A stretch of 64,000 nt of DNA, from the sequence record MH791398.1, one strand, 5' to 3'. This document shows, in pieces, positions 3,122 to 56,666 of this stretch (positions are counted from its first letter, which is position 1; each line of letters begins with the position of its first letter). The notes beneath the pieces were generated by a model. The model was not told the DNA's origin and made no database searches. It saw only the letters and a list, made by a program, of their open reading frames with translations. The translations under genes were made by a program, and so were the position numbers.

Positions 3122-4268
3122 GTCATATGATTACGTGATAATGAATCCACCATATAACAGGAATCTTCACTTAGACTTCTTTAACAAAGCGAGTTGTATT
3201 GGGAGAGAGATAATTTGTGTGCATCCATCTGCACCATTTTTCAATCGTCGCCCGGTAAAAGAACAGAAACGTGTGGTTGAATTTAAAAGTGTGGTTGGAG
3301 AAAACATAACATCGATGGAACTAATCGATGGTAACCTTTATTTTTCTGCTGGGTTGTTTGTTCCATTATCCATAACCCATACAATAATGGGTATCCCATT
3401 TGATGGGTATATCGATGTATATGGGCCTATGACTAATGGCAGAAATAGGATGAAGGTTGATGAACTAAACTATTTCGGAACCCAGATCTTAAAGCTATAT
3501 GAAGCGCTACCAATTCAAAAGAACCTTTTAAATAGCCAGAATCCAGAAGGAAACTATTTCGTTAACATTGGATTAATCCGTGGGCACGTACCAATAGCAG
3601 GTGAAAGGTTTAACGCGGATTTCTTTACTATGGTTCCAAAAGAATATTCTGTTGAAACGAAACCAAATCTTAAATGGCACCACTATGGATTTGATACTTT
3701 AGAAGAAGCTAATAAGTTCTTGGATTATATCAAATCTGATTATGCTAGGGTGTTCTTGGCACTGTATAAGAATAATCAACACCTCGATTCTGGAACCCTA
3801 GCATCAGTACCGTACCCAGACCTCACCAAACCTCTCCCAACGATTCGTGATTGGATTTGTGGTTATATGGGTGTGTTACCCTACTATGACGTAGAAACGC
3901 GAGGTAGATACCATTCAGGGACGCACACAGAGGATAAGAATCGAGTTGCTTCTGAGTTTGATTTAGAGCGCCAGAAATCCACACACGAGGTGTTTACCCC
4001 AGACGTGGTTACTGATATGTTACTTGACCGTGTTGTTAACTGGGATGGGTCATTCTGTGATCCGGCGTGTGGTGATGGGAATATCCTATACCGTATCGCA
4101 GAACGTCGGTTAGATATGGGGCATGACAAGGAAACTATCGCTAACCAGATATTCGGGTTTGACATAGTTGAATCTAACGTGGTAGCCTGTCGTCAACGTC
4201 TGGCGAACCTTCTCGGGTATCCAGAAGTATTTGACGAGCACATTGTTTGTAAGGACTTTTTAAAATGA
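3114..4268 (+). CDS. N6-adenine DNA methyltransferase, circularly permuted motif order
   Basis: N-terminal DYVIMNPPY (motif IV); C-terminal EVFTP (X), FCDPACGDGNIL (I), IFGFDI (II), CKDFL (III). Confidence 0.85.
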   Translation: MNESYDYVIMNPPYNRNLHLDFFNKASCIGREIICVHPSAPFFNRRPVKEQKRVVEFKSVVGENITSMELIDGNLYFSAGLFVPLSITHTIMGIPFDGYIDVYGPMTNGRNRMKVDELNYFGTQILKLYEALPIQKNLLNSQNPEGNYFVNIGLIRGHVPIAGERFNADFFTMVPKEYSVETKPNLKWHHYGFDTLEEANKFLDYIKSDYARVFLALYKNNQHLDSGTLASVPYPDLTKPLPTIRDWICGYMGVLPYYDVETRGRYHSGTHTEDKNRVASEFDLERQKSTHEVFTPDVVTDMLLDRVVNWDGSFCDPACGDGNILYRIAERRLDMGHDKETIANQIFGFDIVESNVVACRQRLANLLGYPEVFDEHIVCKDFLK

Positions 4269-4651
4269 TTGAACCTATTAGCACAATTTTTGGGTTATTG
4301 GTGTTTTACCAAATAAAGCATTACTCAGCAGATTACCTTCTACAAGGTAAGTATATGCTTGGGAAATTTAAAGAGGTTGGTTGGGTTACACCACTGGCTG
4401 CACATTGTACTGTACATGCATTAATGACAATGTTCGTTGCGATCATTATGGGTTTGAACATATGGGCTGTACTCGGTCTTACTCTTTTTGATTTTATCTC
4501 TCACTTCTTTATTGATAAAATGAAAGTTGAATTAAGTCGAGGTCACACACCACAAGAGCCGGTATTTTGGTATCATCTCGGGCTAGATCAAATGGCACAC
4601 CATCTTGTTCATTACGCAATAATTTTTACTATCGTGAAAATTCTTTTTTAA
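4265..4651 (+). CDS. DUF3307-like membrane protein
   Basis: KHYSADYLLQ, AAHCTVH, SHFFIDKMK and LGLDQMAHH His/Asp motifs between hydrophobic helices. Confidence 0.75.
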   Translation: MIEPISTIFGLLVFYQIKHYSADYLLQGKYMLGKFKEVGWVTPLAAHCTVHALMTMFVAIIMGLNIWAVLGLTLFDFISHFFIDKMKVELSRGHTPQEPVFWYHLGLDQMAHHLVHYAIIFTIVKILF

Positions 4652-4657
4652 AAGTAG

Positions 4658-4685
4658 TTGATCTCATATCTAACTCGTGTATACT
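4658..4685 (+). promoter_or_regulatory. early sigma70-like promoter
   Basis: TTGATC-16-TATACT with TG extension. Confidence 0.6.
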
Positions 4686-4717
4686 ACTCATATCAACTAA
4701 CGAGAAGGAAGAAAGAT

Positions 4718-5005
4718 ATGGTAATCGCACTTGGTTTTGTTGCTGGTGTTTGTTTCGTAAAATCGGTACAGGCTACTCGCGCAGCATATCAACGCGCTTT
4801 CACTACTGGCTATATCGTAGCCGGTCTTTCTTCCATATCTCTTCTTGCCATGTCTTAAGGGGATGTTATGACTTTTGCTCTGTTTGCAACCGGGTTTGGT
4901 TTAGGTACTGCTTTTATGGTATCGAAGAAAAAGAAACATAAGGTTATTGTGGTTGGTGTGAGTATTATTGCTGTTCTTGTTGAGGTTTTCCTACTTCCTA
5001 AATAG
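4718..5005 (+). CDS. two small membrane peptides (4718..4858, 46 aa; 4868..5005, 45 aa)
   Basis: RBS-preceded ATGs and hydrophobic translations (MVIALGFVAG..., MTFALFATGFGLG...). Confidence 0.6.
4997..5004 (+). promoter_or_regulatory. putative late promoter CCTAAATA
   Basis: Same 8-mer lies upstream of the spanins (60123) and the tail fibre gene (60853); variant of T4 late TATAAATA; 30 nt upstream of ATG 5034. Confidence 0.55.
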
Positions 5006-5033
5006 ATATGTAGATCTACGAAAGGAAAACAAC

Positions 5034-5909
5034 ATGTTGAAAACTAAAGAATTGTTCGAAACCCTGACCCGGTTTGATGAACAAATGGCACAAAGCCGAA
5101 ATCAAAAGGTCGAACTTACTAAAGATCAGGAATTCGAACTTAGCAAACAATCAAAGCTACCTGTTTCTATGCGGGTTGGTGCGTTTAAGGTTCAAAGTTC
5201 TGTTCATGCTCAAGCTCGCGCACACCAGCGAGCCGCTGCTAAAACGGCGGAAGAGTGGAAAGATTTTGCTCGAAAGATGGTAAAACACGTAGAAGCAAAC
5301 AAGATTAAGAATGGTACTTATATGTTCCATTCCCAATCGGAAAACCGCTCTGTAGTTGGTTCTGTAAAGGGTCGAGAAATCAATATAGTAACTGTGTTCC
5401 CAAAAGGAACTGGTGGTAAAATTTCTCATAAACAACAAGCTGCTGGACAAAAAAGCGCAATGATGGAATCGCTCGTTGAATCTCTTATGATACAAGACGA
5501 GTTTGAGTCTATGCTAAATGAAGCCAAGAATATCATTGGTTCTGATATAGATGGGGTTGAGGTGTTTGACCTTGACGAGGCAACAGAAAAGGCTGTTTCC
5601 GAAATGCCAGATGAACACAAGCCATACTGTCGTGATATTTGGCAGGATCCAATTCATCGGTCAACTGGGTCGGTTGCCCAGTTTGGTACAATTTTTCTTG
5701 ATGATTCTAACGATCCCGGTTTCCCTTTGATGATCGGTGATGTAAAGAAGGCTAAAATTGGAATCGGTGGTGAATATATTCCCATTGACCTTCGTCTAGA
5801 TTCCGGGAAATATGCATATGGTTCCATGGATGAACTAAAAGAGTTCCATCATGTGGATCTATATGATACAATTGCCGCTAGAAACTATGGGTATGGGAAG
5901 GATTACTAA
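5034..5909 (+). CDS. putative internal head protein with RegB/RelE-like N-terminal domain
   Basis: True start ATG 5034 (RBS AAAGGA); FKVQSSVHAQARAHQR...INIVTVFPKG; several xxE gp21-like sites (LVES, LNEA, LDEA). Confidence 0.5.
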   Translation: MLKTKELFETLTRFDEQMAQSRNQKVELTKDQEFELSKQSKLPVSMRVGAFKVQSSVHAQARAHQRAAAKTAEEWKDFARKMVKHVEANKIKNGTYMFHSQSENRSVVGSVKGREINIVTVFPKGTGGKISHKQQAAGQKSAMMESLVESLMIQDEFESMLNEAKNIIGSDIDGVEVFDLDEATEKAVSEMPDEHKPYCRDIWQDPIHRSTGSVAQFGTIFLDDSNDPGFPLMIGDVKKAKIGIGGEYIPIDLRLDSGKYAYGSMDELKEFHHVDLYDTIAARNYGYGKDY

Positions 5910-5910
5910 A

Positions 5911-6243
5911 ATGTTAAAGAATAAAGAATTTTTCGAACGAATCGATGAATCGTTTCAAATGAAAACATCCAAGGATTACAACCGGATTGTAAACCAATAC
6001 ATTTCTATTCTGAACAGTGTTCAAGCAAAAATGAATACTGCCGGTATGCGTGAGGCAAAACGTTTCTATGAAGTCCAAATGGGTGAATGGAAGCGTTGGG
6101 TAAAAGAAAACGTAGATATTACCAAGGTTAACATCAGCCCTATTGAGGATTTTGGTAAGATTACTTGGAAACGGTCTCAGTCTGACACACAACAAAGTTT
6201 TAACATCGCACACGGTAAACTTACCGGTATGCTCAAGAAATAA
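5911..6243 (+). CDS. putative internal head protein
   Basis: Start MLKNKEFFERIDES resembles a capsid-targeting leader; track start 5851 is upstream GTG. Confidence 0.5.
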   Translation: MLKNKEFFERIDESFQMKTSKDYNRIVNQYISILNSVQAKMNTAGMREAKRFYEVQMGEWKRWVKENVDITKVNISPIEDFGKITWKRSQSDTQQSFNIAHGKLTGMLKK

Positions 6244-6251
6244 GGAACAAA

Positions 6252-6524
6252 ATGAAAAAGTTTAATGAACTGGATAACCGCCTCGACGAGTCTATGATTG
6301 CAGAATCCAAAGATCTGATCAGTTCTGACTTCAAAAACTCCATTGCAAAGTTTTTTAATACTTGGATTGAACATCACGAACTAAAGTTTGGTTCTTTCGA
6401 AGCTAAGGCTAAATGGTCGGGAGAACAAATTGCAAAGAAAACCGCTATCGGTAAAGCGGCTGTTATGTTTGCTATGGGTCAAAACAAAGATGTTGTTGAT
6501 GCAGTAATGAAAGCCAAGAAATAA
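6252..6524 (+). CDS. putative internal head protein; paralog of 40112..40291
   Basis: MKKFNEL...LDESMIAES leader resembles the T4 CTS MKTYQEFIAE. Confidence 0.55.
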   Translation: MKKFNELDNRLDESMIAESKDLISSDFKNSIAKFFNTWIEHHELKFGSFEAKAKWSGEQIAKKTAIGKAAVMFAMGQNKDVVDAVMKAKK

Positions 6525-6528
6525 TTTT

Positions 6529-6578
6529 ATGGAGTCTTGCGAGAAATCGCTTGACTCCATTTTTGTTTCTGATACTAT
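6529..6578 (+). terminator. terminator overlapping an early promoter (PeSL-like cassette)
   Basis: ATGGAGTC..GCGA-GAAA-TCGC..GACTCCAT then TTTT; TTGACT (6551) in the 3' arm, TACTAT at 6573. Confidence 0.8.
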
Positions 6579-6602
6579 GGATTCTCAAACGAGAGGTGTT
6601 TT

Positions 6603-8645
6603 ATGAAAATCCAATTTATCAATGAAGATGTACGAAAAGTTGTGGTTTCAAAAGGTAAATCGTTGGCTGGGAAAAACGAATGGCTCATCGAGATCCCACG
6701 AAGTGAGAATTTCATCGTTGTTAATTTCAACGGAAACCCGTTGAGAGAGATTGATAATGCTGCGGTTGTTAGCTGGTCTTTCAACGGGCGGGACACCATG
6801 GAATATCTAAAAGAGATCCATAAAGACATCTACTATCAGACTTATATGGATATGTTACACACTCTCATTCTTCCAATGTTGGAGAGGGTTTAATTATGTG
6901 GACTGGTAAATTTGTTGTAAAATCATTTGTTCAATTGTCAAGAGAGTTTGAGTCTCTGAAAAAATACGAATATCGAGCATTCGAGAGTTCGGTGGAATCT
7001 TTACTGAATGATCTATACCCTATTGCATCGGCAAAAGGTTATGATGTATTATGTTGGTCGATGGTCCCAACCCACGATAGAAGTCCACATGTTTCTGTGA
7101 TGTTTACATTTAAATCTAGGAGCTAAAAATGAAACAATCTCGTATCGATAACGTAAACAACAAATCAATCGAAAAGTTCATCAACGTAATCAAAAGCCAG
7201 ATACGAAAAGTTCAGGAACAGGACTTTTATGATGCGGTTGCGGCCATTCCGGACGAATTGAAGTTTGATATTGTCCGTACCTTGAAAGACCTTCGTAAAG
7301 AACATCTGGGGAAAATCGATATTGTGGAAACCCCTTTTAATTCTGGTGTTGTCCGTGTAGAATATGAATTCAAGATTAATGGGAAAGTCCCAGTAAAAAT
7401 GGTGTACCATTGTTCCGATAAGATCACATTCCTTATCACAGAAGGGAAGTTTGAATCGGTTACCGGTGTTGAACAATGAAATATTTGGTAATAGGTACTT
7501 TACTTGGTATCTTGGCTATAGTAAACTCAGATGTATTCCAGAGTGAAAACGTAGATCTTCTTGAAGATTCCGTGTCTGGACTTAGTATTTTAATTGAACA
7601 AATGGAGAAATAGAAATGAAAAAGATGATTATCGCAATCCTTGCTGTACTGTCCTTATCTGCCTGTACTGATGCAGACGGAGCCCGTCGTGTATTGACCC
7701 AAAACGGATATACAAACGTTCATGTGGGTGGTTATGCTTGGTTTAGCTGTAGTGAAAAAGACACCTTTGCAACCAAGTTTACCGCAGTAAATCAAGCATC
7801 TGGTCAGGTTGTAAACGGTGCTGTCTGTTCTGGTTTGCTCTTTAAAAATTCCACCATCCGGTTTGAATAAGGTTTATTGATATGAGTAATCATGTATTGC
7901 GTGTGTATCGTTGGAAGGATGAATCGTCGAAAGACAAATGGTCTATTTCCGCTAGTGGTTATCAAAAGCTAGTTGCAATCTCCAACGACGTGATGAATCT
8001 TGAGGTTCTTGTTTGTGGATGTGATACCTACCAAGGTCGAAACCATGTAATGAAAATCGATGGGATTGATTACGATTATGGCGTATCAATCTTCACGACC
8101 GACGACATCGAGAATTTTTTGGTGGAATTATCGAAGGATGAAGTGGAGAAACTTTTCAAATGAAAGTAAAATATTTTGTATGGAAAGACGATAAATCCAA
8201 AGAAGATTGGAAAAATGATTTTTATAAACAACTTGGATTTGATCTGGAACAGTACAAGCCAATAGTTGATGAGATTTACAATATTGATACCCCGATGAAA
8301 TGTGTCATGAGTGACCGTTGGGAACAAACCATTGACACGGTTAATGATATTGGGATCCCCGGTTGGTTAATGTTTAGCATGAGTGATATTGTGGAAAAGG
8401 TTATCGTTGAGGTAGACCCCCCACATCAAGAGGTTAATATGAAAGAGCCTAAACTAGTAGAGCAAGGGTTTATCCCTGAAAGCGGTATGTTTACTGCTGT
8501 GTGGATAGAAAATGGTGTTATTCGTTCTGAGGATTTTATTGCCGAGGGTAATATGGTTGCAATCGCACGTATGCCTGAAATAAAATTCCCGTTGATTGAG
8601 TTAATTTTCCCTTCCAATTATAAAATTTTTGCTATCGAGGAATAA
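6603..8645 (+). CDS. run of small hypothetical proteins (6603..6893, 6896..7126, 7129..7479, 7476..7613, 7882..8163, 8160..8645)
   Basis: Abutting ORFs with RBSs; 7476..7613 (45 aa) found by manual translation. Confidence 0.7.
7616..7870 (+). CDS. predicted lipoprotein
   Basis: Signal peptide with lipobox LSAC; two further Cys. Confidence 0.8.
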   Translation: MKKMIIAILAVLSLSACTDADGARRVLTQNGYTNVHVGGYAWFSCSEKDTFATKFTAVNQASGQVVNGAVCSGLLFKNSTIRFE

Positions 8646-8647
8646 AG

Positions 8648-8911
8648 ATGAAAGTACGTTTTAAAAGTGACCAATGCTATGATGAATTTATGTCTACAAT
8701 TAGTGATGAAATTGTGACATCAGAAACCTCGTGGGCAAGCAAGGACGTACATGATATCTTTTCTAATATTGCACCAGACGAGGTATTTGAGGTAGAATTT
8801 ACCGATAAAAATGAAATCAAAGCGGTAAATGGGTTCCGACCGTTTGACGAAGGTTCTACATTCACAGTTATGTTCAAAGACGAAGTAGATAACTATCTAG
8901 ATTTCGTTTAA
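8648..8911 (+). CDS. MK(I/V)RFK family small protein
   Basis: N-terminus MKVRFKSDQCYDEF. Confidence 0.7.
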   Translation: MKVRFKSDQCYDEFMSTISDEIVTSETSWASKDVHDIFSNIAPDEVFEVEFTDKNEIKAVNGFRPFDEGSTFTVMFKDEVDNYLDFV

Positions 8912-8920
8912 TTAAGCCCC

Positions 8921-9001
8921 TAGGAAGCTCTACAATCAATTCTAAAAGTAATCCTATAACTTTGTATCGGTTTTGAATAGAATTGATTGTAGAGCTTCCT
9001 A
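8921..9001. repeat. perfect 24-bp inverted repeat with 33-nt spacer
   Basis: TAGGAAGCTCTACAATCAATTCTA (8921-8944) / TAGAATTGATTGTAGAGCTTCCTA (8978-9001). Confidence 0.95.
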
Positions 9002-9006
9002 TGAGG

Positions 9007-9112
9007 TAGTATCACCTGAAATCAAAATATAAAATCTCTATAAGTATTTATATAGAAGATCTATAATTAGAGAGCGAAGCGAACCGCCGAAGGCGTACTC
9101 ACTACGTTCGTA
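9007..9112. repeat. dispersed repeat copy 1: AT block plus GC mini-hairpin cluster
   Basis: CTATAAGTATTTATATAGAAGATCTATAATTAGA at 9038-9071 is identical to 52579-52612; GCGAAGC and GCCGAAGGC follow. Confidence 0.9.
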
Positions 9113-9127
9113 TTTTAAGGAGTAAAA

Positions 9128-9508
9128 ATGTTAAATTGGTTCAAGAAAACTGATACACTAGATCTGGTTGTAGAGATCTCTTATTACGATTCCATGAATT
9201 GTCTGGTGTTAATTGATACCCCCGAGATTCCTGTTACCTTCACAAAAGGTTGTGACGTTAGGGAAACAATAAATTCCACAATCATCACGTTTGCAAAAAA
9301 CGATAATAAGATCCAAAGTGCATTTAAAGATATTCGTGTTCCATCATTTGTTCGTAGTGGTTGGTTAGATGATTATAAACAAATACACAATGGAAATTTC
9401 GAAAAAGTAAAATCAAATCGTAAATTTTGGAATCATACCATTATCGATGTATCCGGTGCAAAAACACGGTGGGGTAAAGATATTCAAAGGTCTATTAAGG
9501 GGAAATGA
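9128..9508 (+). CDS. hypothetical protein
   Basis: 126 aa with RBS AAGGAG. Confidence 0.75.
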   Translation: MLNWFKKTDTLDLVVEISYYDSMNCLVLIDTPEIPVTFTKGCDVRETINSTIITFAKNDNKIQSAFKDIRVPSFVRSGWLDDYKQIHNGNFEKVKSNRKFWNHTIIDVSGAKTRWGKDIQRSIKGK

Positions 9509-40293: not shown

Positions 40294-43200
40294 ATGAAAT
40301 TTAAGAAAAATCAAGAGATTGTATGTGTTAACAACCTTGAGATGGAGGGTATTTTAGTTGTAGGTCAAACATATCTTGTTGACAAATACACAAGTCTTAT
40401 GACTGGTGACATTGTTCAACTATTCGGGGTTAAAATTCAATTATCCCCATCTCGTTTTCTTCCAATTGGTCATAAAAACGAGTTGGAGATAATGAGTCTA
40501 TATTATAAAGTTCGTGAACTTGATAGCGAAATTGAAGAATGTTTTAATATTGAAGCATTGACCGGGGTTGACCATTATTGGAAGCGGGAAAAACTCCGTG
40601 GGCAGATCGATGATATTGAGCAAGATATCAACAATCTAAGGGAAGACGTATGATTTTCTGGAAAAAGAATACTTGGGGGAGATTGGCTATCGGTGACTCG
40701 TTTAATGATGGTAACCTTAAGTCTAAAATCGTTGATATAAACCATATGTATGGTCAGATCAAACTAGAGAGTGGTGTAGAGATCAAATTTGATTCTGTGC
40801 ACAGTTACTATTACAAAACACAAACATCTCACTGTAACACAACTCAGTGGCACTACGCCTTTATTGACGGCTGTTTGTATACGTTTGGTGAACGTGAAGA
40901 ACTTAAGGTTGGTGACGTTGTACGAGCTTCTTATTATGACGACGCAGACCGTCTTAAACATGTGTGTTTTGTGGTAAAAGATTTCTTTAAGTCCGACTCT
41001 ATTATCGTTGAAATTGAAGGTAATGAAGAGATCTTGACAGTCGGTTATGGTCATTTGATTACACTTTACAACGACGACCTACCTTCTTATTTTTGTAACG
41101 ACCTTGAGGTTGGTGTTGGTGGTCTGGTTGAGAGGATCCGAGATGAACGACGGGCTTGTTAAACTTGAGGTTGAAGGTAAAGAGGAATGGGTTGACTCAT
41201 TCCTCAACCTGAATAAAATTCCTTATGTATCAATTGGTTCGGCTAGAATCTTTAAGATGAACAAAGAAAGTGCTTGCTATATGACGAAATGTAGTTCATC
41301 ATACGTTACCGATGACGATATTGAACTTTACAAAAGAGAATATGGGGTGTAAAGTGCATTATACATTGTGGTTTGACTACTGGAATAATTCAGCTTCTGT
41401 GTTTGAAACTCATCTCGAACTATCAGGAATAAAATACGAATGGGAAGAACGAGAGGGGGATGAATCCACCATGGGGCTGGATGGTCTTGTTTATGGGTTT
41501 TTCAGTGAAGAAGACCTAGAAAAAGCAAGTAATATTTATTTGGATATGTGAGATTTTATGACATTTCTTAATGTTTTTGTTCTTGAAACCGTGATTGGTG
41601 TTGTAGTAATATTTGGTCTGTTGGTCTGGCTTGAAGTTCGTAAGGAAAAATAATAATTTATTGTTGCTTTTTGAAAATAGATAGATTACATTATCCCATA
41701 TCGAAACAAGAGGAAGAAATCATGACTGCTAACGAATATGAAGTAAACAAGGCAACCCGTATCGCAGAAATGCAAAAGAATGCGGATTATATCCTTTCTA
41801 AGGTAGACCCTGTTCTTCTCCCATACATTCAAGCATACCCTAGCTGGTGTATTGGGCAAGCCGATACTACCGTTGCATTCATTGCAACTGGTAAAGAGGT
41901 TGAAGGTGGGGTCGAATACTTCAACGGGCGAACCATTCAATTCATTATGCACGAAGATGAAACAAAGTTTAAAGTCCTTTTGAGTAGTGTTGGTAAGCCG
42001 GTGCTTCGTAAGAAGAAAACCCAACTCGAAGCATGTGATGCAGTAATCAAGTTCTTTAATGAAAACGTTGAAAACTTTATGGCTGTTGTAGCCAAATTTA
42101 ACTGAGGAAATTATTATGTTCGAATCTATCAATACTTGGTTGTTTACTTTGTCTGGCTGGGAATGTTTTTCTCTGGTACTTATGGTTGTTGGTACATACT
42201 TCCATTGGAATGCGCCACTTCTTCGTATTGCGGTAATCAATAACAAGCTGTTTGGTGATGGAAAACTGACGGTCGATCAACACCCGATTGGTACTATTAC
42301 CGAGGTTCTTTGGTATTATGGTATCTACTACTTTGTTACTCTGTAAGGACTGGATATGAATACAAAGCTCAATGATTTTGTCAAGAAAATGACGTTTGGT
42401 TATTATACAGTATATATGAAAGGTGATATCCAAATTTTTGTTCATGCTACCAACGGACGTCAGATCACACCTAATCCATTCGGAAACCATCCCGTCTATA
42501 TGTCTAGTACTGAGTTTCAAGAAAAATACGGAGATGATATCTTACATGTAGAACATGGAATCAACACCCCACATGGTCATGATGTAAACAGGGTGATAAC
42601 GGAACAACTACAAGTAGGGTCTACTGGTAAGATCACCGAATATGGATATGATGACACATACGATTTCTTTGTATCTGAAATGTCCATACAGGGAGAAGAT
42701 GTTTTAGTAATGACATACTACACCAGCAAGGATAATATCAAGTCTTGTTCTATTGAAACAGTTAATGATATCATACAGTCATATTACGAGGTACAACTAT
42801 GAAAGATATAATCGAAAAAATTGATATCGGTACTGAGTTTTGGGATGGTCGTTTTGGTCCATTCAAATGCACAAAGAAACCAGAATTTACCAAAGTCAAT
42901 GCAAATAGAGACGATGGGTATATCTGGAAAGCATCAGATAAATTTGGTTTAGAGCATGAATTTTTATGGATTGAGAAATATTCTCATTATGGTCCAAAGA
43001 TTTATCTATATCAGGCTTATATGAATTAGGATAGTTTCTAAAAATAGTAGTTGCATCTTTAGCCCGTTCGTGTAGAATGGGCTTTGTTGATTCGGAGGAA
43101 ACGATATGAACCATTACGTTGAACTGAACATGAAGAAGTTAGAATCACTTGGTAAACAGGCCGCATACTGTCGAAATATGTTGTCAAAAGACATTGACGA

Positions 43201-51700: not shown

Positions 51701-52081
51701 AAACGGTTGGGCTTCTGCATCCAAATATGTTCGTGGTAACGTGAGCAACTGGAAAGACGCTATGCATGTTGGTTCTCGCTCCGGTATCTACGGTTTCATC
51801 GCGATTCGCTAAGAGGAAAAATTATGATTATTAGTCTGAATATGCATGAGTTTTATGAACTTTACCCGTGTTATCAAGAGTGGGTTTGTAATGAATCCCC
51901 TTCCCAATATTCTATCAATGCGGTTTATAATCGTATGATGCATAAGAAATCTCTAAACGTTATGGAAGCTCAGGAAGTTATGGCGTTTATTGCTTGGGTT
52001 GAAAACAACTCTTGCAAAGAAGATCTAGAAATCCTCAAATCAACTATCCAATATATGAAAGGTGTATTAAATGCTGCTTGA
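45783..52081 (+). CDS. run of about 18 hypothetical proteins
   Basis: ORF track; promoters at about 46266, 48515, 50134, 50774, 51368. Confidence 0.7.
46888..47340 (+). CDS. GNAT-like acetyltransferase
   Basis: CYVKDEFRNSGVGSELVNRL (motif A, RxxGxG) and LFWESLG. Confidence 0.6.
   Translation: MIVDYGDVKVYSGSHIKEICQYLLDKKMYVEGWSLKPYLVQVIKFEKRFITKVAIKYKDGNPVGLATRGLLSGYKNFMMCYVKDEFRNSGVGSELVNRLKVDGESHWAYTGYSYSVLFWESLGVVPHTQHRSCCGDKFTSIFLKINNKKR
48515..48545 (+). promoter_or_regulatory. early promoter with a hairpin spanning spacer and -10
   Basis: TTGACA-17-TATCCT; AGAGGATAC/GTATCCTCT stem. Confidence 0.75.
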
Positions 52082-52550
52082 ACAAATTAAGAAAGACCAA
52101 ATTAAAGCCCGTAAATCAGAAGACCGTTCTACCCATCACGGGAAAGTTCGTATCAACGCTCTAACAACCCTAATTGGTGAAGCAAGTCCTTCCGGTAATC
52201 AGGTAGTAACTGACGAACAAGTCCAATCGGTTATTCGCAAATTCGTTAAAAACATTGACGAAGCAGTTACCGAGATCCGCAAAAGGGTTGTATCCGTATC
52301 AAACGATATGACTAATCAAGAAGTGATGGATATTCTTAAAACTGATATCAAATTCACGGACTTGATGATCGAACGTGAACTGCTGAGTTCCTATCTTCCG
52401 AAGGTGTTTGGTGAAGAACATATCAAAGAGGTACTTAGTCAGCTCGTTGGTGGTTCTAACATCGGTCAAGTCATGGGCGCTTGTAAGAAAGCAGCTTCTG
52501 CCAAAGGTCTTTTGTTTGATGGTGCCCTTGTCAAAAAGGTACTGGGCTAG
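52071..52550 (+). CDS. GatB/YqeY domain protein
   Basis: LLEQIKKDQIKARK, LTTLIGE, VTDEQVQSVIRK, ELLSSYLPK, NIGQVMG. Confidence 0.8.
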   Translation: MLLEQIKKDQIKARKSEDRSTHHGKVRINALTTLIGEASPSGNQVVTDEQVQSVIRKFVKNIDEAVTEIRKRVVSVSNDMTNQEVMDILKTDIKFTDLMIERELLSSYLPKVFGEEHIKEVLSQLVGGSNIGQVMGACKKAASAKGLLFDGALVKKVLG

Positions 52551-52646
52551 TATCATATGAAATCAAATTATAGATTTCCTATAAGTATTTATATAGAAGA
52601 TCTATAATTAGAACGAGTGAAACGAGTACGGCGTAGCCGGTTCGCT
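52548..52646. repeat. dispersed repeat copy 2: AT block plus inverted GC mini-hairpin cluster
   Basis: 34 bp identical to 9038-9071; GAGTACG..GGTTCGC is the reverse complement of the copy-1 GC module. Confidence 0.9.
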
Positions 52647-52660
52647 AAAGCTCACCAATC

Positions 52661-52729
52661 TGTCTAGAATCAATTCCTCGTTATCTCATACAATGTTATT
52701 GTATTCTCCATAGGAATTGATTCTAGACA
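52661..52729. repeat. perfect 18-bp inverted repeat with 33-nt spacer
   Basis: TGTCTAGAATCAATTCCT (52661-52678) / AGGAATTGATTCTAGACA (52712-52729). Confidence 0.95.
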
Positions 52730-52748
52730 CCATACACGAGGTTTAATC

Positions 52749-56124: not shown

Positions 56125-56364
56125 ATGATTGATATGACATTATTTGGTGGTGGGGTAGTGTCTGGTCTTACAAAAGATGGAAAACCTACCCATATCAACC
56201 TTAAAGACCATTCAATGGAAACGGTCAAACTGTCTATCCAAAAAGATGCGTTTGGGTATGAAGTAAGTATTATTATTTTTCCATGTGGTAGTACTGCAAG
56301 ATTTATTGGTGATGTTCGAAATCGAACTGATGTGATCCTAAGAGACAAAGATTATAAAATATGA
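56125..56364 (+). CDS. hypothetical protein
   Basis: ORF track (ATG 56125). Confidence 0.65.
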   Translation: MIDMTLFGGGVVSGLTKDGKPTHINLKDHSMETVKLSIQKDAFGYEVSIIIFPCGSTARFIGDVRNRTDVILRDKDYKI

Positions 56365-56633
56365 AAATTACAAAAGTTGAATTGATGAAAGATATTGTAG
56401 CTACCGCATCTATCTTGGCAAAATATGGCTGTGATGACATTCTAGATACTCAATCTGGGTTTGTAGATTTTCTAAATGAACTAGGGTTTACTACCGTGCG
56501 AGGTAAACCATTAACGATTTTTAATTTCAGAGTTATGGTTAGTAGTCTAACCCCATATCAGAAAAAAGAGATTATAAAAGAATTTGATGCTGGTAGAATT
56601 GATCATTTGATTAACTGTATGGTTGACGAATAA
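56361..56633 (+). CDS. asiA: anti-sigma70 factor AsiA
   Basis: DIVATASILAKY..DDI.....FVDFLNELG...FR..VSSLT...KK.II.EF matches T4 AsiA; 90 aa. Confidence 0.9.
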   Translation: MKITKVELMKDIVATASILAKYGCDDILDTQSGFVDFLNELGFTTVRGKPLTIFNFRVMVSSLTPYQKKEIIKEFDAGRIDHLINCMVDE

Positions 56634-56666
56634 AAAAGGGATCCTGTGAGGATCCCTTTTGTTTTA
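56632..56666. terminator. bidirectional terminator
   Basis: AAAAAAGGGATCC-TGTGA-GGATCCCTTTTGTTTT. Confidence 0.85.

Follow-up and report, generated by a model that had tools for sequence, protein, structure and literature searches.

A six-copy AT-rich palindromic element in the T4-like Aeromonas phage Asswx_1, a tentative class of origin or promoter sites

Asswx_1 (MH791398.1) is a T4-like Aeromonas phage with a genome of 229,103 bp and belongs to the genus Ceceduovirus (Straboviridae, Emmerichvirinae). In a 64,000-nt stretch of this genome (the window; bases 1–64000 of the record, matched at 100% identity with identical coordinates), we analysed two noncoding gaps located in arrays of small hypothetical genes on the plus strand. 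The first gap (8912–9127) lies at the boundary of ASswx1_22 and ASswx1_23, and the second (52551–52748) at the boundary of ASswx1_144 and ASswx1_145, with ndd, gp52 and asiA starting roughly 440 bp further downstream. Each locus combines an AT-rich block, a GC-rich module and a long inverted repeat, and the initial annotation, made from the letters alone, had described the pair as a two-copy composite. Here, we find that the two stretches are two members (c1 and c2) of a six-member family of elements of around 115 bp, consisting of the AT block and the GC module; only the long inverted repeat is confined to two loci. We compare the possible roles of these elements and rank first, tentatively, one as replication origins.

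Self-BLAST of the 229-kb genome returned the AT block six times, mostly accompanied by the GC module: c1 (8999–9110, plus strand), c2 (52543–52612, plus strand), c3 (81137–81216 onward, plus strand; locus 81075–81306), c4 (123367–123478, minus strand; locus 123321–123574), c5 (147939–148056, plus strand; locus 147900–148244) and c6 (189555–189666, minus strand; locus 189577–189780). Copies c4 to c6 share about 97–100% identity with one another over roughly 115 nt. A 34-bp identity between the first two copies, already noticed in the initial annotation, is exact (9038–9071 equals 52579–52612, with 0 expected by chance), and their similarity reaches 70 bp at 87% (9002–9071 versus 52543–52612). 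All three modules are present at both loci, as had been claimed, but their order differs, running from inverted repeat to AT block to GC module at c1 and from AT block to GC module to inverted repeat at c2, and the GC module recurs at c2 as the reverse complement of the usual module. The consensus unit, about 115 nt long, proceeds from AGTTTCA..TGcAATCAAA through a left hexamer, a dyad core (CTATAAGTATTTATATAG), AGATC, the right hexamer TATAAT and TAGAAA to a GC-rich imperfect palindrome, which closes the unit with the 3′ end CTCACTACGTTCG. All six copies are intergenic and their orientation is mixed; c3 sits among late genes, between gp26 and gp54, and c5 follows gp35. Both c3 and c6 are antisense to their neighbour genes, and no open reading frame (ORF) follows c6 on its own strand. 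The copy at c6 overlaps the final 22 nt of the annotated coding sequence ASswx1_316 (189385–189576), the call or the end of which is doubtful. The gaps between copies measure 43.5, 28.6, 42.2, 24.6, 41.6 and 48.5 kb, a spacing more even than chance when compared with 200,000 random placements of six points on a circle (P(minimum gap ≥ observed) = 0.0057, P(maximum gap ≤ observed) = 0.0014 and P(standard deviation ≤ observed) = 0.0016).

The AT block consists of a conserved left end and an AT-rich quasi-palindrome of about 56 bp. At c1 (9007–9071, plus strand), the left end is TAGTATCAcctGAAATCAAA, and the quasi-palindrome carries a left −10-type hexamer, TATATT, on the minus strand (9026–9031), the dyad core (9038–9055; CTATA-N8-TATAG) and a right −10 hexamer, TATAAT, on the plus strand (9062–9067), with the dyad core at about −28 from the predicted starts of both hexamers. 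The c2 block (52548–52612, plus strand) has TATAAT on the minus strand (52567–52572), the dyad core at 52579–52596 and TATAAT on the plus strand (52603–52608); it is the most palindromic in this genome, with 21-nt arms that are 86% complementary and 8 nt apart. Each block of the family contains two such hexamers, outward-facing and 30 bp apart, and in several copies the right-half pattern is found again in the reverse-complemented left half. The internal repeats of the block are inverted (TCTATA/TATAGA/TCTATA) and form no direct-repeat array. At up to three mismatches, the dyad core occurs exactly six times in the genome, each time within one of the six elements, and neither the half-site-plus-hexamer architecture nor degenerate relatives of it were found elsewhere in the genome. 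In 40-bp nearest-neighbour stability calculated over the 229 kb, the AT blocks rank 2–6 and 9 among the least stable loci, with the c1 block one of the first six, and the c2 block is the least stable 60-bp window in the genome. Two further loci (168985–169062 and 191069–191132), the only ones with 8 or fewer G+C per 60 bp, are more AT-rich than the elements and unrelated to them in sequence.

The right hexamer reads TATAAT in all copies read but two, namely ZPAH1 c2 and c3a of phage 65, where it is TACAGT. The left hexamer, on the other strand, reads TATACT, TATATT, TATAGT or TATAAT. Positions T1, A2 and T6 are invariant across copies and genomes, which is the conservation pattern of sigma-70 −10 elements. 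No −35 element was found for either hexamer, the 17-bp position at c1 being TATAAG (2/6 to TTGACA), and a consensus scan detected no full sigma-70 promoter in the element.

The GC module is a GC-rich imperfect palindrome of about 40 bp on one side of the AT block, in either orientation. At c1 (9072–9110, plus strand), CGCC (9085–9088) and GGCG (9092–9095) form the apical stem around a GAA loop, followed by the conserved 3′ half CTCACTACGTTCG (9098–9110); the Shine–Dalgarno (SD) sequence and the ATG of ASswx1_23 lie downstream, at 9128. At c2 (52613–52657, minus strand), where the module is inverted relative to the AT block, CGGC (52629–52632) and GCCG (52636–52639) enclose a GTA loop. The inversion is visible in the identities of the c2 module in Asswx_1 (33/45 reverse versus 29/45 forward) and is clear in ZPAH1 (36/42 reverse versus 26/42 forward). 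It is also found in CC2, AS-zj and ZPAH1, ACGAACGAAGTGAGT being the exact reverse complement of the ZPAH1-type ACTCACTTCGTTCGT, and in ZPAH1 the inverted module keeps the 15-nt motif exactly in reverse complement. The apical stem varies yet stays paired, with CGGC/GCCG in most copies, CGCC/GGCG in c1 and ZPAH1, CGCG/CGCG in ZPAH1 c2 and CCC/GGG in 65.2 c2, and the loops are free. A pseudoknot-like arrangement (GTGAG:CTCAC with CGAAC:GTTCG) and a long imperfect hairpin are both 94–96% paired, and variation is too sparse to favour either. The distance from hexamer to GC module ranges from 4 to 15 nt, and the hairpin begins 0–8 nt past the predicted start site. As the motif is kept when inverted and the hexamer distance varies, we read the module as a feature of the DNA, and we argue that it may work as a symmetric DNA feature or a generic hairpin and not as a specific RNA sequence.

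A hairpin placed directly after a −10 hexamer could also be the beginning of a small-RNA gene, in which the GC module is transcribed from TATAAT as a short structured RNA and six copies provide a high dose. The covariation of the apical stem with free loops would suit such an RNA, as would substitutions that leave the pairing intact through a sense-strand G·U, at phage 65 c4 and in a metagenome copy (CGAAC to CGAGC). We nevertheless regard this explanation as improbable, given that the copies have no common terminator or defined 3′ end, that folding energy is mixed with no consistent strand preference, that the module is inverted at c2 and that the folding z-scores of the GC modules (−0.7 to −0.8) are not significant. 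A search of the window with Rfam 15 likewise gave no match at the gathering level, permissive searches returning only matches far below it. An intrinsic (rho-independent) terminator was considered and rejected: the scan for a GC-rich stem-loop directly before a T-run found none on the relevant strand in either region, and only c1 has TATTTT after the GC module.

The third module consists of a long inverted repeat at each of the two loci, LH1 and LH2. LH1 (8921–9001) starts 10 nt past the stop codon of ASswx1_22 and has perfect 24-nt arms (8921–8944 and 8978–9001) with a small apical hairpin in its loop, and LH2 (52661–52729) ends 20 nt upstream of the ATG of ASswx1_145 and has perfect 18-nt arms (52661–52678 and 52712–52729) with a 7-bp apical hairpin in its loop. 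The repeat finder bears out the earlier description of these repeats: the arms are 100% complementary, 33 nt separate them in both cases, and the cores CTACAATCAATTC and CTAGAATCAATTC are each matched only in both arms of their own repeat. The 64 kb contain no other long perfect inverted repeat, and in single-strand folding LH1 and LH2 reach −43.6 kcal/mol (z −9.4) and −29.2 kcal/mol (z −8.4), respectively. A shorter, imperfect hairpin of the window, at 40440–40493, has 19-nt arms that are 89% complementary and separated by 16 nt. In c1 and c2 of both Asswx_1 and ZPAH1, the loops of which are not alignable, AATCAATT and AATTGATT stand at a constant distance of 39 nt, so the observation that spacer length is kept while spacer sequence changes holds between genomes as well. 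The LH1 stem is kept in CC2 (with two G·U pairs, plus strand) and in ZPAH1 (with one mismatch), and phage 65 has an unrelated stem of 11–14 bp in place of these arms at c1, again with a 33-nt loop, the centre of which (CCTATAACTTTGTATAGG) is common to Asswx_1. CC2, AS-zj and ZPAH1 retain LH2 at the 39-nt core-to-core distance, and the long hairpin is absent from c2 of phage 65.2. Across genomes, then, the pairing and geometry of the repeat are under selection and the arm sequence is not, and replacement of the arms with the pairing kept favours a hairpin in single-stranded nucleic acid.

These observations bear on the reading put forward in the initial annotation, in which the inverted repeat is the centre of the element, either as half-sites for a dimeric protein about three turns apart or as a cruciform, within a two-copy origin, packaging or recombination site. 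The perfect arms with the same 33-nt spacing at both loci, the 39-nt core distance maintained in ZPAH1 despite different loops and the arm core AATCAATT common to c1 and c2 would agree with it. However, the repeat is found at only two of six conserved loci in Asswx_1 and is lost from one of them in phage 65.2, and it lies on opposite sides of the AT block at c1 and c2. The arms at phage 65 c1 are wholly different and still pair, and replacement of the whole stem between genera speaks for a hairpin over sequence-specific half-sites, making a dimeric site unnecessary. From the physical chemistry of DNA, a 33-nt spacer disfavours cruciform extrusion, which is thus improbable here. We therefore consider a role centred on the repeat very unlikely. 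The long inverted repeat is an accessory hairpin and most likely acts in RNA, as a structure for processing or stabilizing the flanking transcript; for a perfect stem of 18–24 bp that lies in the way of the flanking mRNA, such a role would be the simplest one.

Conservation in related phages, one of the checks suggested with the initial annotation, extends to all six loci. By BLAST, the element matched 21 of 50,697 phage records, all of them Aeromonas Emmerichvirinae, with mostly five or six places per record (range 4–9), and in all 21 records it is unannotated at these loci; nor did we find a prior description of the element in the literature searched on Ceceduovirus, Ishigurovirus and phage P19. 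A pattern scan of IMG/VR retrieved only the isolates 65, CC2 and AS-zj, one AT-block pattern had 0 matches in 185,579 bacterial genomes, and a strict pattern returned nothing from the JGI metagenomes, where a looser one returned two 65-like fragments among 69 chance matches; these scans revealed no other viral or metagenome contigs with the element. Flank mapping places the copies of CC2 and AS-zj in the position and orientation seen in Asswx_1. In the 65 lineage, all six loci are occupied (c1, c3, c4, c5 and c6 in phage 65, c2 in 65.2), and the flanks have diverged to about 70% identity between the CC2-like and 65-like lineages. Each genome has specific variants common to all its copies, such as TTCTATAA-TATATTAATAGAAACTTTATAAT in phage 65 and CTCTATAAGTATTTATATAGAAGATCTATAAT in every Ceceduovirus copy. 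Because the loci are the same across lineages and the genome-specific variants are shared, the sites are old and fixed and the copies evolve in concert, which rules out recent mobility. Concerted evolution would be expected if a single phage-specific factor reads the copies as cis-sites, or if gene conversion homogenizes them.

Sequences that are multi-copy, intergenic, present in both orientations and near-identical within a genome may also be selfish miniature mobile repeats without a function for the phage, similar to miniature inverted-repeat transposable elements (MITEs). This is the least probable of the explanations that we consider, as the six loci and their orientations are kept across two genera, well-assembled genomes have no extra or missing copies, the spacing is even, and the element has unrelated ends with no terminal inverted repeats or target duplications.

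The even spacing, together with the dyad symmetry, the concerted evolution and the orientation independence, could instead point to an architectural or recombination site, at which a DNA-binding protein organizes domains of around 25–50 kb (for topoisomerase, condensation or clamp loading) or at which recombination is preferred, the hexamers being incidental. The GC module in either orientation would be compatible with this role, as would the c3 locus of phage 65, a gap of about 500 bp between gp26 and gp54 in which two convergent AT blocks surround two GC hairpins (CGCC-TTT-GGCG and CGGGC-AAA-GCCCG), with a CCTCTAG...CTAGAGG hairpin beside them. Two records, AS-sw and AP1, also join unrelated flanks exactly at the element. 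In AS-sw (3786–9479), the c4-upstream flank (the gp21-inhibitor gene) occurs a second time, joined at the element to the genes downstream of c1, and the normal c4 locus is also kept intact; the AP1 stretch (217521–223061) is mosaic, composed of many small segments of the Asswx_1 map. The intact c4 and the mosaic make these junctions look like assembly errors, probably seeded by the 115-bp repeats, and we rejected the rearranged flanks as evidence of recombination. An architectural role also leaves the T1-A2-T6 conservation in both hexamers unexplained, and we know of no such system in T4-like phages. We consider it unlikely, if less so than the small-RNA, repeat-centred and mobile-repeat explanations.

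Conserved hexamers lacking a −35 element bring transcription into consideration. Asswx_1 encodes AsiA (window 56361–56633; PF09010, 74.8 bits), which blocks −35 recognition by sigma-70. Phage 65 was reported to have AsiA and no recognizable motA (PMC2988021), and no motA is annotated in the stretch of the phage 65 record that was read, which runs from gene 36 past asiA, 52 and ndd and covers the syntenic region. The elements might thus be purely transcriptional: six bidirectional, −35-independent promoters equivalent to a 'middle mode', with an activator on the dyad and no role in replication, whose transcripts would carry a protective hairpin at their start, either the GC module or, at c1 and c2, the long hairpin. 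The variation of the −10-type hexamers fits sigma-70, and AsiA is present in a lineage with no known MotA. In four of the six copies (c1, c2, c4 and c5), the right hexamer faces a co-oriented gene or small ORF located 20–60 nt downstream of the copy, and the left hexamer faces gp26 at c3 and the SLT gene at c6. Just upstream, c4 and c5 are preceded by intrinsic terminators and c1 by a long hairpin that lacks a U-tract (c2, c3 and c6 have no counterpart), and the proximity of the GC hairpin to the predicted start site is also as this explanation would have it. On the other hand, T4 has tens of middle promoters, whereas the 229 kb contain only six of these sites, with no degenerate relatives. 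Even spacing and near-identity across 115 bp, non-promoter parts included, are unexpected of promoters; inversion of the GC module at c2 with its motif kept leaves no common leader RNA; and gp26 and the SLT gene have late promoters of their own (CTAAATA) between element and gene. On balance, we hold purely transcriptional cassettes to be nearly as likely as the origin reading to which we now turn, which leaves both of them tentative.

The elements differ from the recognizable promoter classes of this genome. Ahead of late genes, CCCTAAATA(a/c) takes the place of the T4 late promoter TATAAATA, as upstream of 119253 (gp23), 115280 (gp20) and 140380 (gp34). We therefore rejected the minus-strand TATAAATA of the AT block as a late promoter; the phage 65 element also lacks TATAAATA. 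Ordinary early promoters (TTGAC(T/A)-N17-TAnnnT), the best of which have ctgG in front, constitute another class, and this assignment, like that of a PeSL cassette, was set aside for an element that has no −35, occurs in six copies only and is antisense to its neighbours at c3 and c6.

Our preferred reading, still a tentative one, is that the elements are factor-bound unwinding and promoter sites that serve as replication origins in the manner of T4 oriF and oriG. A phage-specific factor would bind the dyad, and the AT block, among the easiest duplex in the genome to melt, would open. Host RNA polymerase, its sigma-70 remodelled by AsiA and hence −35-independent, would start at one or both hexamers, and the transcript and the opened DNA would prime replication, as at oriF and oriG. 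The GC palindrome could bound the unwound region or act as a loading structure, and the six elements would constitute the origin set of the phage. We infer every step of this scheme from binding onward. The origin set is ranked first because fixed, evenly spaced, orientation-independent and meltable palindromes with −10 hexamers seem to fit the logic of the T4 origins better than any other known logic, and the earlier suggestion of candidate origins stays a live idea.

Several points weigh against this reading. GC skew has no inflection at the elements, which is uninformative rather than negative since GC skew tracks gene strand only, and both GC and AT skew were set aside as origin signals for following gene strand. 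AT-rich DNA surrounds the hexamers and the GC hairpin lies downstream, whereas the unwinding element of T4 oriF and oriG is downstream of the promoter. An origin family defined by sequence would be unlike T4, where origins have no motif in common. No candidate for the dyad-binding protein emerged, the Pfam scans of neighbour genes giving nothing relevant: the matches on neighbour and AsiA-adjacent genes were AsiA itself, weak sub-threshold matches to Ndd and other families and one borderline match of YqeY type; elsewhere, a DksA/TraR zinc finger was found. The even spacing could partly mirror where long intergenic gaps are tolerated. Finally, the four copies just upstream of a gene, following a terminator (c4 and c5) or the long hairpin (c1), would look like plain promoter cassettes.

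It is possible, and we propose it with reserve, that the six elements represent a sequence-defined origin set, the missing AsiA-dependent promoter class of T4-like phages without MotA, or both, the dyad being recognized by a phage protein. If true, the T4 superfamily would gain its first example of a phage whose origins all have a single motif in common and a single recognition factor dedicated to them. T4 is the textbook phage for the initiation of replication, and its origins, besides sharing no motif, are not conserved among relatives; this has made origins impossible to predict across the T4-like genomes, of which hundreds are sequenced. The element is also relevant to the role of AsiA in phages without MotA (PMC2988021), as it provides the only −35-less, dyad-associated −10 sites in the genome. 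For one lineage, the six copies supply exact, testable coordinates, at 9.0, 52.6, 81.2, 123.4, 148.0 and 189.6 kb. The 115-bp repeats also coincide with apparent mis-joins in at least two deposited genomes of the group.

Some further features of the genome were recorded near these loci or in the course of the promoter scans. ASswx1_144 (52071–52550), directly upstream of c2, gave a YqeY/GatB-C-like match in Pfam that is borderline at 27.5 bits (cutoff 27), and its RefSeq relatives are labelled 'tRNA amidotransferase'; in the window, ARAGORN detected no tRNA genes. Just past asiA, at 56629–56665 of the window, lies a terminator-like AAAAAAGGGATCCT/AGGATCCCTTTT palindrome. Directly past c5, at 148068–148240, an early promoter of the T4 style (GTTTACA-N17-TACTAT) is accompanied by an unannotated small ORF that has an SD sequence. 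The ORF is the positional counterpart of 65p047 in phage 65 and is directed towards the 3′ end of ASswx1_259, a convergent gene. Strong early promoters (TTGAC(T/A)-N17-TAnnAT) occur in the window at 6551, 16392, 21127, 23550, 23883, 27613, 50133 and 57062; several early −10 elements are preceded by ttctgG (an extended −10), and several lie at gene boundaries in small-ORF arrays. A divergent pair of late promoters (CCCTAAATA) is located between 83713 and 83783.

The element can be compared with several known systems. The origins of lambda and of iteron-type plasmids are single-copy and located beside or inside the initiator gene. From general knowledge of these origins, the element resembles them in layout, with dyad-type protein-binding repeats, an AT-rich region and a GC-rich palindrome, but it has six dispersed copies and inverted internal repeats, and the neighbour genes scanned contain no initiator-like domain. 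Bacterial REP and BIME sequences, compared on the same general basis, are likewise intergenic, GC-rich imperfect palindromes in either orientation combined with short motifs. In contrast to the element, however, they number hundreds of copies, are not positionally conserved between genera and lack an AT-rich palindrome with −10 hexamers. Resemblance to IHF sites, DnaA boxes, parS and CRISPR repeats was judged by eye and rejected, the matches being poor.

Closer to T4, the PeSL cassettes of RB49/phi1, T4/PST and KVP40/nt-1 are composite noncoding sequences and possible points of recombination (PMC2839356, PMC4122927). The element is similarly a conserved composite noncoding cassette of T4-like genomes in which a stem-loop is followed by AT-rich promoter DNA, with a hairpin or terminator and then the AT block at c1, c4 and c5. 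PeSLs, however, contain a full −35/−10 early promoter, are numerous, lie in hyperplastic regions and are co-oriented with genes, whereas the element has no −35 and exactly six copies, some of them among core structural genes and two antisense, in positions fixed across genera.

T4 oriF (uvsY) and oriG (gene 34) each comprise around 100 bp with a −35-independent promoter and an AT-rich unwinding element, and T4 origins, which are spread over the genome, share no common motif; the iterons of oriE are 12-nt direct repeats (PMC3016281). The element resembles oriF and oriG in its size of about 100 bp and in combining a −35-independent promoter, which has a sigma-70 −10, with easily unwound AT-rich DNA, and, as with the T4 origins, there is a handful of dispersed sites, several of them near switches of the transcribed strand (compare c3, c4 and c5). 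In contrast to the T4 origins, all six elements belong to one sequence family. Where oriF and oriG have a MotA box at −30, the element has a palindromic dyad at about −28, two divergent hexamers and no TGCTT-type box; its least stable DNA contains the hexamers, with no downstream unwinding element, and 12-nt direct-repeat iterons as in oriE are not seen. The element lacks the features of intrinsic terminators, MITEs, iteron origins and Rfam families, and shares some, although not all, of those that characterize the R-loop origins of T4.

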